The notes beneath the pieces were generated by a model, which ran no database searches, was not told the DNA's origin, and saw only the letters and a program-made list of their open reading frames with translations. 64,000 nucleotides of DNA. It comes from Haliotis rufescens (Eukaryota). Location of the stretch: contig NW_025963890.1 of the NCBI RefSeq assembly GCF_023055435.1, positions 6,758,001-6,822,000 on the forward strand, written 5' to 3'. The position numbers and the translations under genes were made by a program. How positions within the stretch are numbered: the stretch's first letter is position 1; each line of letters opens with the position of its first letter. Shown here one piece after another: positions 11,117 through 61,336 of this stretch.

Positions 11117-11945
11117 AAGCCCCACCACCCTCTCGCCCAAGCCCCACCGCCCTCTCCCCCAAGCCCCACCACCCTCTCCCCCAAGCCCCACCACCCTCTC
11201 CCCCAAGCCCCACCACCCTCTCACCCAAGCCCCACCACCCTCTCACCCAAGCCCCACCACCCTCTCCCCCAAGCCCCACCACCCTCCCCCCCAAGCCCCA
11301 CCACCCTCTCCCCCAAGCCCCACCACCCTCTCGCCCAAGCCCCACCACCCTCTCGCCCAAGCCCCACCACCCTCTCGCCCAAGCCCCACCACCCTCTCCC
11401 CCAAGCCCCACCACCCTCTCACCCAAGCCCCACCACCCTCTCACCCAAGCCCCACCACCCTCTCGCCCAAGCCCCACCACCCTCTCCCCCAAGTCCCACC
11501 ACCCTCTCGCCCAAGCCCCACCACCCTCTAGCCCAAGCCCAACCACCCTCTCGCCCAAGCCCCACCACCCTCTCCCCCAAGCCCCACCACCCTCTCGCCC
11601 AAGCCCTACCACACTCTCACCCAAGCCCCACCACCCTCTCACCCAAGCCCCACCACCCTCTCACCCAAGCCCCACCACCCTCTCACCCAAGCCCCACCAC
11701 CCTCTCGCCCAAGCCCCACCACCCTCTCACCCAAGCCCCACCACCCTCTCACCCAAGCCCCACCACCCTCTCACCCAAGCCCCACCACCCTCTCGCCCAA
11801 GCCCCACCACCCTCTCCCCCAAGCCCAACCACCCTCTCGCCCAAGCCCCACCACACTCTCGCCAAAGCCCCACCACCCTCTCGCCAAAGCCCCACCACCC
11901 TCTCACCCAAGCCCCACCACCCTCTCACCCAAGCCCAACCACCAA
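11117..11945. repeat. 22-bp C-rich minisatellite (AAGCCCCACCACCCTCTC[G/A/C]CCC), about 37 copies
   Basis: Strict 22-bp period; explains the spurious Pro-rich ORF 11108-11962. Confidence 0.97.
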
Positions 11946-14887: not shown

Positions 14888-15518
14888 GGGAGAGAGACAC
14901 GGGAGAGAGGGAGAGTGAGAAAGAGAGAGAGAGGGAGAGAGAGAGATAGATAGAGAGGGGGAGAGAGGGGGAGGGAGAAAGAGGGAGAGAGAGGGGAGAG
15001 ATAGATATAGTGAGGGAGACAGAGAGAGAGAGGGGGGCAGAGGAATGGGGAAAGAGAGAGGGGAGAGAAAGGTAGAGGGGAGAGAGGGGTGAGAAAGGTA
15101 GAGGGAGAGAGAGGGAGAGAGGGGAGAAAGAGGGAGTGAGAGGGGAGAGAGAGGGAGAGAGATAGAGATAGTGAGGGAGACAGAGAGAGAGTGAGGGGCA
15201 GAGGGATAGGGAAAGAGAGAGTGGGGAGAGAAAGGTAAGGGGAGAGAGAGAGAGAGAGATAGAGATAGTGAGGGAGACAGAGAGAGAGAGAGGGAGGGGC
15301 AGATGGATAGGGAAAGAGAGTGGGGAGAGAAAGGGAGAGGGAGAGAGAGGGGTGAGGAGAGAGAGGGGTGAGAGAGAGAAAGAGAGAGAGAGAGGGGTGA
15401 GGAGAGAGAGGGGTGAGAGAGAGAGAGAGGGAGACAGAGAGAGAGGGAGGGGCAGAGGGATAGGGAAAGATAGTGGGGAGAGAAAGGGAGAGGGAGAGAG
15501 AGGGGTGAGGAGAGAGAG

Positions 15519-15549
<31 letters not shown>
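14888..15549. repeat. Complex GA-rich polypurine low-complexity tract with internal duplications
   Basis: ~660 bp that is predominantly A/G on the + strand; blocks such as GATAGAGATAGTGAGGGAGACAGAGAG recur. Confidence 0.95.
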
Positions 15550-15553
<4 letters not shown>

Positions 15554-17614
15554 CAGGCACCACAGGAGAGACCATCAGCATAAGAGGATGAAAAAGATAG
15601 GTCTTTTAGTTTATTGTTTCTCATAAACATAGCCAAGTTCAAGGCAGTATCCACCTGTTTACTCTAACGTAGGTGTCAAGTGAAGGCGTACAGGACACAA
15701 CGCCCACAACATATGACATGTTTATAATACAATACCGCTTCATAACCAGAAGATCCTAACACCCAGGGATATGTATGTCTTGATTTCAATTAAAAGGAGC
15801 CGGGCAGACACTGAGGAAATATCGCAGATTTAAGCACATTTATTGATATAGTTTAATCTAAACGGAATAATGAGTATACAGAGGAACGTAATATTGGGTC
15901 CATTCTAGTAACCAGGGTCCTTAGGATCTTTGTTTATTACAACTTGACTTCCCTCTGCGATATCTAATCTATGTACAGGTATCTACAGGTTACTGTCACC
16001 ATAGTGTGTCTGAACTTGTACTGAGGTAACCTAGGTCGGAGAAGATAGATATACGACTATTTACAGTATCTACTCAATATGGCATTATAACTATTTTTGA
16101 AACAACGGATATCGTTAATAAAGCCTGTTAATACCTATCAATAGTATATTAAAATACAAATACATGTCTCGAACATTTACTTCACAGTGGTGGCGGTTAA
16201 ACAAGTTCACGAGATAGGCTGATATTGAGGTTCGTTGTTAATAATTGACGTGTAGCGTAGACACCGAGTAAGCGAGTCCTACCGAAGACGAGACCGAGAG
16301 CTGAGTGAGGCAGGGTTGTGTGCTGGGGGTACCTACATTAGGCCCAGTCATACTCCAATGCCCGGCTAAGCATCAGTTGTGTGGGACGGTCGCGGACTGC
16401 AGTTTGCCAATCGCTGTGTCAATACCGTCCTCCAATGCAGTCAGAACTCGTCTCGATATGAAGCTGTAGACGGCGTTCCGTGAACTGGCGTGTGGGTATA
16501 GCAACAGTAGCGCCTGCAGTGGTGCAGAGGACCTCCCTCCTCCGACACGTGGGCTGAAGAGTTGAGATCAGCTGATCAGCTATGTCTGTGCTTGAGTTAT
16601 TCAAAGGGACAGTAATAGGGCTTGCGTTGGGAGTGTGAGTTTAGTCTGTACTGCATCGGACTACTTATGGGTGGAGAAAGGATTTTTTTAACTGGTTGAA
16701 ATCCAGCTATGACGTCAACGTGACTTATTCCCGTACCCGAGATCATTTGGAGTGGTTCAACGGAACGCCTTTTGTGTTGAGGAATTCCATGCGTTGTGTG
16801 TAGGTAAAAGAGGAATGATTCATGTAAGCAGTCTCTCACCTGGCGGGGCGGTAAACACGAGCTGGATTGAACTTTATGTCGTGGAATAGCCAACACCGTC
16901 TGTGATCGTCTGTGATGGTGTCTACCCCATGTAGGGGGGCACATAAACATATGTAAGTCACGGTGGTAGTATAAACCTGTCTCTTGACAGTCTGTGGCAA
17001 ACACTACGTATGTGTTTTATTTAATCTGGAATCTATGTTCACAAAGTACTGTCTATGCTTGTTCGATTATATCACAGCTTATCTTAACGTGATTGAATTA
17101 CTGGCATATCTGGCATAGTTGCTGGTGATTCTTATCTGTGATTTGTGAATTAATTATTAACCCTTGAAGACTGAACAGACCTAAATGAAGGCTGTAACGG
17201 AGGTTGTATAACGTGAGGGCTTTGAAAGTCGCACAGGGAGACGGACCCAGGAGGCAGGTGATAATCTGAGTCCGGGGTTGTGTATTGATGAACCGGACCC
17301 GAACAAGACACTGCCTAACGCATGCCAAGGCGACTAGCGTTTTTAAAGTATGACATGTTTTGTGTTCCTGTAACAACGGATGTTCACGACAATGATTTGA
17401 TTGTCCCTCAGCTCTCCACGTCTGGATAATACGCGTAATTATGAGAGTTGGTGTTACGGAGGGGAAGAGTTTTACAGAGTTATTTGAGCGTTTCAACCTA
17501 CAATAGATGACGTTTCATTCGGGAACTTGTAATCACGTTTTTAAAGTAATTGGTCACAGGACGTGAGTGTATGAACACACACGCACATATGAACCAGAAC
17601 CCAGTGAGGGCGTC

Positions 17615-17938
17615 ATGACAAGTATGACCAAAGACCAAGCCAAGGATCTTATCCCCCGGGCTGGTGCCCCACCCGGACAGGTGCCCGTCATGAGGAGGAG
17701 CCGGTCCCTCAGTGAGCTCCCTGGGAGCGTGAGGGTACCCATCATCAGACGGACGGACAATGAGAGGATGAGGGCGAGGTTGGAAGCCAGTGCTCAGGGG
17801 CTGGAGGAGTTGAAGCTGTTGCGTGAGCAGCAGCAGAAGCAGATGGAGGAGGTTCGGACGACGGCGTTGCAGAGGAAACCATCATCGTCGTCGTCAACGT
17901 CGTCTCAGAACGGACGCTTCTCCCAGAGCCAACCACAG
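17615..17938 (+). CDS. First coding exon of a Dapper/DACT-like coiled-coil adaptor protein (108 aa: MTSMTKDQAK...RRSRSLSELP...NERMRARLEASAQGLEELKLLREQQQKQMEEV...SQSQPQ)
   Basis: GC-rich open island in an AT-rich background; in-frame stop at 17564-17566; GTCATG start at 17615; CAG|GTAGGC donor at 17938/17939 (phase 0); helix matches the remembered DACT N-terminal motif RxRxRLEA(S/T)xxGLxELxxLRxxQ. Confidence 0.8.
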
Positions 17939-18499
17939 GTAGGCATCACACGTTACTTGAAATAAATCCACGTCATTGACAGTCGGTACCAGAGGGTTGT
18001 ATACTGTCTTTCAGACTAAGTTGGCTTTCAATAAAATAACTATATTTGACAATGACAGTTAGTATTATGAACGGAAGCTGTGGTACCAATGAGTCACAGG
18101 TAGGAATTCGTAATGAAATAAGCATGATATAATAACAATCAGTATCGTGGACATGCGGTGTACGAAAACGTGGACTGTTACTGTTGTATACATAAAAATA
18201 ATGGCTACACAGTATCCGATATATTCGATTTCTATGGATGTGCCTTATGTGAAGACCCATTCTTCAATGGACTGTTCATGAATGCAGTCGGTAGTTTAGA
18301 TTTCCTCGGACAAGAATTGTACGTGTATTTAAATCCAGTAGGGTTGTATGATGAATGGCCTGACAGACTGAACCAATGTACTAGCAATGTACAGCTAGGT
18401 ATGTGAGGTATGCAGCGCTGTAACTGATAGGTTCGCATACCACGTCAAGTACTGCATCCCAATCAACATGGGACACTGCGAGTTAAAACGTTAGGTATT

Positions 18500-43522: not shown

Positions 43523-45560
43523 ACACTGTTAATCTGGGCCCGTCGTCCCTTGGACACGTATCTAACTAGCCTCCACACAACACTGTTTATCTGGGCACAT
43601 CGTCCCCTTGACACGTATCAAGCTGCCCCCCATACAGCACTGTCTATCTGGGCACATCGTCCCCTTGACACGTATCAAGCTGCCCTCCACACAGCACTGT
43701 CTATCTGGGCACATCGTCCCCTTGACACGTATCAAGCTGCCCTCCACACAGCACTGTCTATCTGGGCAAATCGGCCCCTTGACACGTATCAAGCTGCCCA
43801 CCATACAGCACTGTCTATCTGGGCACATCGTCCCCTTGACACGTATCAATCTGCCCTCCACAGAGCACTGTCTATCTGGGCACATCGTCCCCTTGACACG
43901 TATCTAGCTGCGCTTCAAACAACACTGTCTATCTGGGCACATCGTCCCCTTGACACGTATCTAGCTACCCCCCATACAGCACTGTCTATCTGGGCACATC
44001 GGCCCCTTGACACGTATCTAGCTGCCCTGAACACAACACTGTCTATGTGGGCACATCGTCCCCTTGTCACGTATCTAGCTACCCCCCATACAGCACTGTC
44101 TATCTGGGCACATCGGCCCCTTGACATGTATCTAGCTGCCCTTCACACAACACTGTCTATCTGGGCACATCGTCCCCTTGACACGTATCTAGCTGCCCTC
44201 TACACAGCACTCTCTATCTGGGCACATCGTCCCCTTGACACGTATCTAGCTACCCCCCATACAGCACTGTCTATCTGGGCACATCGTCCCCGTGACACGT
44301 ATCTAACTGCCCTCCACACAGCACTGTCTATCTGGGCACATCGTCCCCGTGACACGTATCTAGCTGCCCTCCACACAGCACTGTCTATCTGGGCACATCG
44401 TCCCCGTGACACGTATCAAGCTGCCCTCCACACAGCACTGTCTATCTGGGCACATCGTCCCCTTGACACGTATCAAGCTGCCCTCCACACAGCACTGTCT
44501 ATCTGGGCAAATCGGCCCCTTGACACGTATCTAGCTGCCCACCATACAGCACTGTCTATCTGGGCACATCGTCCCCTTGACACGTATCAATCTGCCCTCC
44601 ACAGAGCACTGTCTATCTGGGCACATCGTCCCCTTGACACGTATCTAGCTGCGCTTCAAACAACACTGTCTATCTGGGCACATCGTCCCCTTGACACGTA
44701 TCTAGCTACCCCCCATACAGCACTGTCTATCTGGGCACATCGGCCCCTTGACACGTATCTAGCTGCCCTGAACACAACACTGTCTATGTGGGCACATCGT
44801 CCCCTTGTCACGTATCTAGCTACCCCCATACAGCACTGTCTATCTGGGCACATCGGCCCCTTGACATGTATCTAGCTGCCCTTCACACAACACTGTCTAT
44901 CTGGGCACATCGTCCCCTTGACACGTATCTACCCCCCATACAGCACTGTCTATCTGGGCACATCGTCCCCTTGACACGTATCTAGCTGCCCTCTACACAG
45001 CACTCTCTATCTGGGCACATCGTCCCCTTGACACGTATCTAGCTACCCCCCATACAGCACTGTCTATCTGGGCACATCGTCCCCGTGACACGTATCTAGC
45101 TGCCCTCCACACAGCACTGTCTATCTGGGCACATCGTCCCCGTGACACGTATCTAGCTGCCCTCCACACAGCACTGTCTATCTGGGCACATCGTCCCCGT
45201 TACACGTATCTAGCTGCCCTTCACACAACACTGTCTATCGGGGCACATTTTCGCCAAGACACTTATCCAGCTACCCCCCACACATTACTGTCTGGGCACA
45301 TCTTCACCAAGACAATTATTTAGGTACCCAACTCACATCACTGTCTATCTGGGCACATCTTCCCAAAGATACTTTTTAAGGTACCAAACTCACATCACTG
45401 TATATATTGGCACATCTTCCAAAAGACAATTATTTAGGTACCCAACTCACCTCACTGTCTATATTGGCACACTTATTTAGGCACCACATTCACATCATTG
45501 TCTATCTGGGCACATCTTCCCCAAGACACGTATCTAACTACCCCGCACACAACACTGTTG
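43523..45560. repeat. 57-bp minisatellite, about 35 copies, with a 741-bp higher-order duplication
   Basis: Unit GCACTGTCTATCTGGGCACATCGTCCCCTTGACACGTATCTAGCTGCCCTCCACACA; degenerate after ~45230. Confidence 0.97.
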
Positions 45561-60701: not shown

Positions 60702-61336
60702 GAGCAGCCTAGTGATTAAAACATTCGCTAGTCGTGTTGAAGTCCCGGCTTCGCTAGTCGTGTTGAATTCCCGGCTTCGCTAGTCGTGTTGAATTCCCGG
60801 CTTCACTAGTCATGTTGAATTCCCGGCTTCGCTAGTCGTGTTGAATTCCCGGCTTCGCTAGTCATGTTGAATTCCTGGCTTCACTAGTCGTGTTGAATTC
60901 CCTGCTTCACTAGTCATGTTGAATTCCCGGCTTCACTAGTCATGTTGAATTCCTGGCTTCACTAGTCATGTTGAATTCCCGGCTTCACTAGTCATGTTGA
61001 ATTCCCTGCTTCACTAGTCATGTTGAATTCCCGGCTTCACTAGTCATGTTGAATTCCCGGCTTCACTAGTCATGTTGAATTTCCGGCTTCGCTAGTCGTG
61101 TTGAATTCCCGGCTTCGCTAGTCGTGTTGAATTCCCGGCTTCGCTAGTCGTGTTGAATTCCCGGCTTCGCTAGTCGTGTTGAATTCCCGGCTTCGCTAGT
61201 CGTGTTGAATTCCCGGCTTCGCTGGCCATGTTGAATGCCCGGCTTCGATTCCCATAATAGATACTATTTGTGAAACACATTTCTCCTGGCCCTAGCCGTG
61301 ATTGCAAAAAGCGGAGTAAAACCATACCCACTCACT
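60702..61336 (+). mobile_element. SINE family A copy with a 26-bp minisatellite expansion in its tRNA head
   Basis: A box GCAGCCTAGTGATTAAA before the array; TTCGATTCCC, TGTGAAACACATTTC and GCGGAGTAAAACCATACCCACTCAC after it. Confidence 0.88.
60724..61247. repeat. 26-bp minisatellite (TTC[G/A]CTAGTC[G/A]TGTTGAATTCCCGGC) x20
   Basis: TTCG at 60724 to TTCG at 61244 = 520 bp = 20 x 26. Confidence 0.97.

Follow-up and report, generated by a model that had tools for sequence, protein, structure and literature searches.

DACT1-4 (Dapper/Frodo; PF15268) are Dishevelled-binding proteins of vertebrates that regulate Wnt/PCP and TGF-beta signaling. The reference survey of these genes, entitled 'Dact genes are chordate specific', reported that a dedicated search with Dact queries in 2014 retrieved nothing from Aplysia, and the dact gene of the amphioxus Branchiostoma floridae is so far the sole non-vertebrate member (Schubert et al., 2014; PMC4236578). 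A 2025 study ascribes the vertebrate use of PCP for convergent extension partly to 'a chordate-specific protein Dact1' (PMC11897371), and our literature search found no report of a Dact relative outside chordates. The amphioxus protein is highly diverged: its motif 1 is recognizable (ending in ARLMASEAAMEELRLLRQRE) and its motif 4b is degenerate (YPYSPMHAI), while it keeps the leucine zipper, which exon 2 encodes, and lacks a PDZ ligand. Dact4 and some Dact3 proteins lack the zipper, which is accordingly not universal among DACT proteins (Schubert et al., 2014; PMC4236578). Dact4 and dact4r, found in fishes and reptiles, possess an extended motif 1 (ending in VAGLLELEVLRVKHKVMVE), and Dact4 has lost the PDZ ligand MTTV.

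The locus described here lies in a 64,000-nt stretch of a 1.33-Gb abalone (Haliotis) genome, on a scaffold of 79.7 Mb (C112; G000:C112:6758001-6822000), which is referred to below as the window and is numbered from its first nucleotide. An earlier note, drawn up from the letters of the window, had drawn attention to an open frame encoding a DACT-type N-terminal motif and had suggested either a lophotrochozoan Dact ortholog or an adaptor related to DACT, LURAP1, or FAM89. The analysis presented here indicates that the DACT family, as yet described in chordates only, probably has a diverged relative throughout the molluscs.

Gene structure and transcripts

The locus represents coding exon 1 of two in an abalone gene for a protein of 716 aa. 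An open frame of 108 codons extends from an ATG at 17615 to 17938 and is followed by GT at 17939, bearing out the coding exon proposed in the earlier note; the peptide singled out there, NERMRARLEASAQGLEELKLLREQQQKQMEEV, represents residues 49-80 and is encoded by nucleotides 17759-17854, precisely where it had been placed. The features of the gene are as follows (window positions, unless a scaffold is named):

16300 to 17614, plus strand: 5' UTR of exon 1; transcript-type contigs run unbroken from 16300 (X1) into the coding part
17615 to 17938, plus strand: first coding exon; 108 codons between the ATG and the GT donor, ending in phase 0
17690 to 17758, plus strand: basic block with phosphorylatable residues, MRRSRSLSELPGSVRVPIIRRTD (residues 26-48); conserved and immediately N-terminal to the helix
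17759 to 17872, plus strand: amphipathic alpha-helix (residues 49-86); DACT motif 1 aligns with residues 48-74
17939 to 64000 and beyond, to G000:C112:6827178, plus strand: intron 1; GT donor at 17939-17940, total length 51,240 nt
C112:6827179-6829002 plus the stop codon (this would be 69179 to 71005 in window numbering), plus strand: exon 2; outside the window

Transcript assemblies from three runs belonging to three studies (X1, X3, and X12) leave the genome exactly at 17938; the sequence that follows in them, CTCAACCAGAGAAGAATGTCAGCTGCCTCC, is identical to the initial 30 nt of exon 2, past the acceptor AG. Since the contigs cover 16300-17938 and then continue into exon 2, both transcription and the splice are proven, and the 5' UTR has a length of at least 1.3 kb. 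Contigs from X3, X12, and X9 begin at about 16500-16540 and likewise reach the coding part of exon 1 unbroken; position 16300 is to be read as the minimum 5' extent, with the transcription start located there or upstream.

Exon 2 begins 5.2 kb past the end of the window and consists of a single open frame of 608 codons, which is preceded by a polypyrimidine tract and an AG acceptor, contains a block resembling motif 4b (IQCE ... MPSPLHAVLHGF) as well as a PDZ ligand, and ends RQTEV-stop. The exons were searched one at a time, with the closest database relative, the Haliotis asinina ortholog (P0003, 710 aa), and P0039, a Haliotis cracherodii protein from RefSeq (716 aa = 108 + 608), serving as stand-ins for the full-length product. 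The abalone genome matches P0003 in two pieces only, corresponding to exon 1 and exon 2. Exon 1 is identical to P0039 throughout and exon 2 shares 97% identity with it; this agreement establishes Haliotis as the source, so that the gene is molluscan, as had been supposed, and a chordate source is ruled out.

The abalone gene has two coding exons, compared with four in DACT genes. In amphioxus dact, the exons encode 73, 58, and 872 aa (PMC4236578); the corresponding values in abalone are 108 and 608 aa, and, as in amphioxus, the bulk of the protein is derived from one very large last exon. In Haliotis rubra, a RefSeq isoform (X2; P0040) begins with MFRYEAEIR, nine residues of different sequence, followed by exon 2, and an alternative first exon may thus yield a protein without the exon that encodes DACT motif 1; no counterpart of the MFRYEAEIR exon was found in the intron-1 sequence covered (the window, L006, and L002).

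A family of molluscan proteins

A phmmer search with exon 1 against 1.84 billion proteins gave 30 matches at E<=1e-3, of which 14 carry a source name, in every case that of a mollusc; the others are unnamed and untyped fragments, and no DACT protein was among the matches at this threshold. The named gastropods are Haliotis, Gigantopelta, Lottia, Plakobranchus, Elysia, Lymnaea, Biomphalaria, and Bulinus, and the named bivalves Mytilus, Saccostrea, Pinctada, and Sinanodonta; word searches added two further genera, Bradybaena (gastropod) and Potamilus (bivalve). Family members are labeled as uncharacterized or hypothetical, with the exception of two automatic names (LIM domain-containing protein A-like and CUPID-domain protein).

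Alignments of 13 full-length proteins (A1) and of 18 N-termini (A2) revealed a small number of conserved blocks separated by long, variable, serine-rich stretches. These are RSRSL.ELPG..RVPIL.R, R..ARLEA..AGL.EL..LRE.Q, ST.SL.SI.EE, SW..LL, RS.SF, RRASIQCE.VLT, P[SG]P[LMV]HAV.LQY, DDGY.T.DS with a serine run, and the C-terminus. In the 18 N-terminal sequences, L35, P36, G37, R40, and V41 do not vary, and RSRSL hardly does. A CAG|GT boundary is read through at one common place in many N-terminal fragments, which suggests that the position of the intron is common to gastropod-type fragments, several of which are unnamed.

Most of the protein is probably disordered, judging from an ESM Atlas model of the whole H. 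asinina protein (P0003) with a mean pLDDT of 0.39. A profile search of the PDB gave no match, and searches of the ESM atlas with the whole protein and with its N-terminal part returned noise-level rows only (ITPR-interacting, APC, Dendrin, and MACIR), Dapper being absent from them.

The N-terminal helix and DACT motif 1

AlphaFold2, supplied with the 18-sequence alignment A2, predicted a single helix, H49-86, with a pLDDT of 92-97 and no other fold. The block that precedes it (MRRSRSLSELPGSVRVPIIRRTD) is predicted without secondary structure (pLDDT approximately 67-73); it has no clear counterpart in DACT1-3 and represents an addition of the molluscan family relative to DACT (RSRSL..LPG..RVPI). 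By eye only, this block resembles the SLWSG..RVRIG lead-in of Dact4 motif 1.

Comparison with DACT was made by means of the short motif strings published in Additional file 9 of the reference survey (Schubert et al., 2014; PMC4236578). The vertebrate DACT sequences given in the earlier note agree in substance with these published motifs, and the tests relied on the published strings. Motif 1 of lamprey dactB is ERSRASERLEASMAGLAELELLRRRHE and that of lamprey dactC/D is ERIRARERLEASIAALRELQLLREERE (PMC4236578, Additional file 9). The Haliotis segment that aligns with them, DNERMRARLEASAQGLEELKLLREQQQ, is identical without gaps at 13 of 27 positions to the former and at 14 of 27 to the latter. 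When the lamprey dactB, lamprey dactC/D, and dact4r strings were placed without gaps on the 13 full-length family proteins and scored with BLOSUM62, the best match was the helix in every protein, in one and the same register, with scores of 36-67. When either the motif or the target was shuffled, p was at the floor of the test (3e-4) in most comparisons and <=5e-3 in all of them, and exon 2 alone, used as a control, gave nothing with the motif-1 strings.

Exon 1 is also the top match of each of the three strings in the six-frame translation of the window, by 59 against 35, 65 against 33, and 46 against 34, the first two scores being those of the lamprey strings and the third that of dact4r. 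In 3 × 10^7 random residues, maximum scores were 47-52 for a generic composition and 57-64 for a composition matched to the helix; for the two lamprey strings, these maxima were 49 and 47 (generic) and 58 and 64 (helix composition). Scores of 59-67, the Haliotis values of 59 and 65 among them, surpass the random maxima of both compositions, which the dact4r score of 46 does not. Scores of bivalve proteins reach 67, the value obtained for the Mytilus sequence NVAGLEELKMLRQKHGKMVE, and the agreement of the bivalve helices continues into the extended tail of Dact4 type (..LR.KH.KMVE), the extended motif 1 of Dact4 and dact4r being close to that of the bivalve members. The columns conserved within the molluscan family, R.LEA..AGL.EL..LR, are those conserved in DACT, and in both groups of proteins motif 1 (ER..R.RLEAS.AGL.EL..LR..Q) is encoded by the first coding exon. 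The helix pattern that the earlier note had recognized is therefore a match to DACT motif 1 beyond chance, as assessed with both shuffled and random sequences.

The central block and the C-terminal tail

Between the helix and the tail, the family appears, from sequence likeness, to possess a further hallmark of DACT proteins that the earlier note had not predicted, namely motif 4b. In Dact1, this motif reads PKYQCDLVSKNGND.YRYPSPLHAVAVQSPMF (PMC4236578), and its core string, YPSPLHAVALQSPLF, matches the conserved central block of the family, which is MPSPLHAVLHGF in Haliotis, FPSPVHAVTRQY in Mytilus, YPSPMHAVLRQF in unionids, and PGPLHAVTLQY in heterobranchs. Scores of 36-45 were obtained, with p at about 1e-3 or lower in 11 of the 13 proteins. 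The two exceptions are Pinctada, with a score of 28 and p of 0.03, and H. asinina P0003, in which the central block, at 38, is narrowly outscored by a C-terminal EPSPVHG segment at 39. By chance, such matches are expected at 0.7-4 per 10^7 residues, the rate at the Haliotis score being about 4, which for one protein of 716 aa amounts to a chance of roughly 3e-4. An element of the type [IF][QR]C[DE] is situated 26-31 residues N-terminal of the PSP block in 15 of 17 proteins. The QC[DE] element corresponds to the YQCD of DACT, and the central motif in both cases takes the form [YF]QC[DE].. followed by [YF]PSP[LM]HAV.[LV]Q; the spacer between the two parts is longer in the molluscan family, at 26-31 residues compared with 16 in Dact1.

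A C-terminal PDZ-binding motif had been predicted before the C-terminus was known. Haliotis proves to end in RQTEV, and [ST]-x-[VL] is found at the end of all 16 complete family proteins, whose C-termini are RQTEV, [KRQ]QTAV, KQTDV, KQTDL, KQTSV, and LETAL. The molluscan tails, like those of DACT (T-x-V), belong to class I as a class, although in their actual residues (QT[AEDS]V, QTDL, or ETAL) they differ from MTTV. The DACT tail is [LV]MTTV, and lamprey dactC ends in STDV (PMC4236578). In retaining a PDZ ligand, the molluscan proteins differ from Dact4, with which they share the lack of a zipper, and they present the reverse of amphioxus dact, in which the zipper has been kept and the ligand is missing.

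DACT features that are absent

The leucine zipper that had been predicted downstream of the helix is absent: no run of four heptad-spaced L/I/V/M residues in a helical context was found in 17 proteins. A pattern scan of the same number of proteins detected none of motifs 2d/2e (DSRPSS, GFYELSD), motif 8b, or a nuclear localization signal of the KKCRF type. In relation to DACT, the molluscan family is therefore without the zipper (motifs 2a-c, which serve homo- and heterodimerization) and motifs 2d/2e, and motifs 5, 8b, and 11d/e do not rise above chance. The zipper together with motifs 2d/2e and 8b are the parts that are derived from exon 2 (and exon 3) of chordate Dact genes, and abalone transcripts splice exon 1 directly to the last exon. 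Two further candidate likenesses were dropped. That of RS.SF to motif 4a (RRSFSAP) does not exceed what chance yields in proteins so rich in serine, and that of DDGYSTCDS to motif 11d (SDSEYSAEC), which with 11e marks the serine-rich region of DACT that binds Vangl, gave p >0.1 in 15 of 16 proteins, with the matches scattered.

The Pfam Dapper profile (PF15268) had no match at E<=10 in the exon, in 13 full-length proteins, in four central segments, or in the six-frame translated genome. The earlier note had counted such an outcome against its proposal. This test has low power, as the model has 817 positions and a local match is charged about 18 bits (log2 of M(M+1)/2), which is all that a short motif can score; the null result is thus given limited weight. 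The six-frame Pfam search found no other Dapper-like locus in the genome.

Genomic context

Genes of the Ehd, Eml, Fos, Mark, Rtn, and Sipa1l families are linked to all Dact loci (Schubert et al., 2014; PMC4236578). In abalone, EHD, EML, MARK, and two Rap_GAP genes, which may include the counterpart of SIPA1L, are all located on scaffold C223 (at 9.98, 33.3, 37.2, 56.9, and 63.96 Mb), and Reticulon is on C587. The DACT-like gene, on C112, is unlinked to these counterparts of vertebrate Dact neighbors, and linkage accordingly lends the DACT relationship no support; the comparison constitutes a weak test over such an evolutionary distance. The EML/Rap_GAP/MARK/EHD paralogon that flanks the four vertebrate Dact loci is an old linkage group, and the DACT-like gene lies outside it. 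Neither RPA2, the neighbor of amphioxus dact, nor SPAR_C was detected in the abalone genome.

The genome contains a Dishevelled gene. The Dishevelled-specific domain was matched at three places with equal scores, two of them about 107 kb apart on C35:30.77-30.88 Mb and one at C97:0.03-0.06 Mb; the pattern points to tandem duplication and/or to a haplotig left uncollapsed, C97 being a small contig.

Relationship to DACT proteins

Three DACT features occur in the molluscan proteins in DACT order, and two of them are individually well beyond chance. The reading we prefer, with a probability of about 0.65, is that the family, which encompasses gastropods and bivalves, is a diverged DACT homolog without the zipper. 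Its support consists of short motifs in a disordered protein, and DACT1-4 and the molluscan proteins also resemble each other in being long, serine-rich, disordered adaptors with a large last exon. Alternatively, the family could be a mollusc-specific disordered adaptor without DACT ancestry, in which the helix, the PSPLHAV block, and the PDZ ligand were gained independently, perhaps for the same conserved partners. PDZ ligands evolve convergently, T-x-V forms are common, and such an origin would be in keeping with the null result for the Dapper profile, the restriction of named relatives to molluscs, the unlinked Dact neighbors, the missing zipper and motifs 2d/2e, and the chance-level likeness to motifs 4a and 11d. 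Independent gain would, however, have had to produce three motifs in the order found in DACT, two of them with high positional identity over 12-27 residues that is far above the controls, and conserved columns that coincide in both families. The joint chance of motif 4b (about 3e-4) and a class I tail in a protein picked for motif 1 is about 1e-5, a rough figure in which the chance of a class I tail, 'a few percent', is an estimate from background amino-acid frequencies. We consequently regard independent gain as unlikely, while taking it seriously as an explanation.

The other candidates are far less credible. LURAP1 and FAM89B (LRAP25) are small adaptors with a leucine-rich helix, and an adaptor of the LURAP1/FAM89 (LRAP) type, as put forward in the earlier note, has nothing in its favor beyond a general resemblance to a short leucine-rich helix. 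Neither exon 1 nor any of 13 full-length proteins matched Pfam LURAP or any other family at E<=10, no zipper segment of the LRxxD..LL.QL type is present in the family, and the molluscan proteins share no common motif with these adaptors; on present evidence they are unrelated, and the suggestion is very improbable. Equally hard to credit is membership of another named family, whether CUPID-domain, LIM-domain protein A-like, or MACIR/UNC119-binding. The first two are the UniRef name of the Elysia marginata member and the RefSeq name of the Gigantopelta member, respectively, and the third is the first row returned by the ESM atlas; against these names, no member contains a CUPID, LIM, or UNC119_bdg Pfam domain at E<=10, and the atlas rows score 0.76-0.79, where the calibration of the tool itself puts scores below 0.8 on a par with shuffled proteins.

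For the preferred reading of the family as a diverged DACT homolog, a narrower question is that of orthology. The earlier proposal of a Dact ortholog gained from the helix, the PDZ tail, and the molluscan origin of the gene, and lost ground over the zipper, the Dapper profile, and linkage. The chances stand about even that the family is the true Dact ortholog and that a core of helix, PSPLHAV block, and PDZ ligand predates the split between protostomes and deuterostomes. Were that the case, the zipper exon would either have been added later, in chordates, or have been lost in molluscs, and the label 'chordate-specific' would be wrong. The further step to the bilaterian ancestor that was taken in the earlier note is an inferred one: linkage to the Dact neighbors is not conserved and, because all named relatives are molluscan, the step depends entirely on the link to DACT.

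Putative function and significance

By analogy with DACT, the protein would be a phosphorylation-regulated scaffold, in which the RSRS and RS.SF sites point to basophilic kinases as regulators. The C-terminal tail may dock in a PDZ domain. Dishevelled, for which the genome has a gene, is its most likely partner, although a class I ligand of so generic a type could likewise be used by Scribble, Dlg, or other PDZ proteins. The central motif, as the putative counterpart of a region implicated in Tcf3 binding and internal Dishevelled binding, may add a second contact, and the N-terminal helix, which corresponds to a predicted nuclear export signal, may function in partner binding or nuclear export. 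Vertebrate (Xenopus) Dact1 has been described as a Dishevelled 'cross-linker' that acts through zipper dimerization in convergent extension (PMC11897371). As it has no zipper, the molluscan protein probably cannot cross-link Dishevelled through zipper-mediated self-dimerization, and at the PDZ domain of Dishevelled it is more likely a monovalent competitor or recruiter than a cross-linker.

A molluscan relative without the zipper would shift the origin of this Dishevelled adaptor far back, and would make zipper-mediated cross-linking a candidate chordate novelty. It would likewise provide about twenty 'uncharacterized' molluscan proteins with a testable function, and a natural zipper-less DACT for comparison in the embryos of snails and oysters, in which Wnt/PCP signaling controls spiral cleavage, axis formation, and shell-field development.

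Repeats around the gene

A (GA)n tract of approximately 660 nt occupies window positions 14890-15549. It lies upstream of the transcript contigs, whose 5' end is some 750 nt away, and may be a promoter-proximal element of the GAGA type or a mere microsatellite. Further upstream, positions 11117-11943 contain open frames rich in proline and serine in all three plus-strand frames; the region comprises 38 copies of a 22-nt unit with 95% matches, and was rejected as a gene and assigned to satellite DNA. Another satellite, with 32 copies of a 57-nt unit (43524-45471), lies within the 51-kb intron, and others consist of a 106-nt unit in 12 copies (1089-2361), a 26-nt unit in 20 copies (60724-61247), and a 25-nt unit in 20 copies (1-583).
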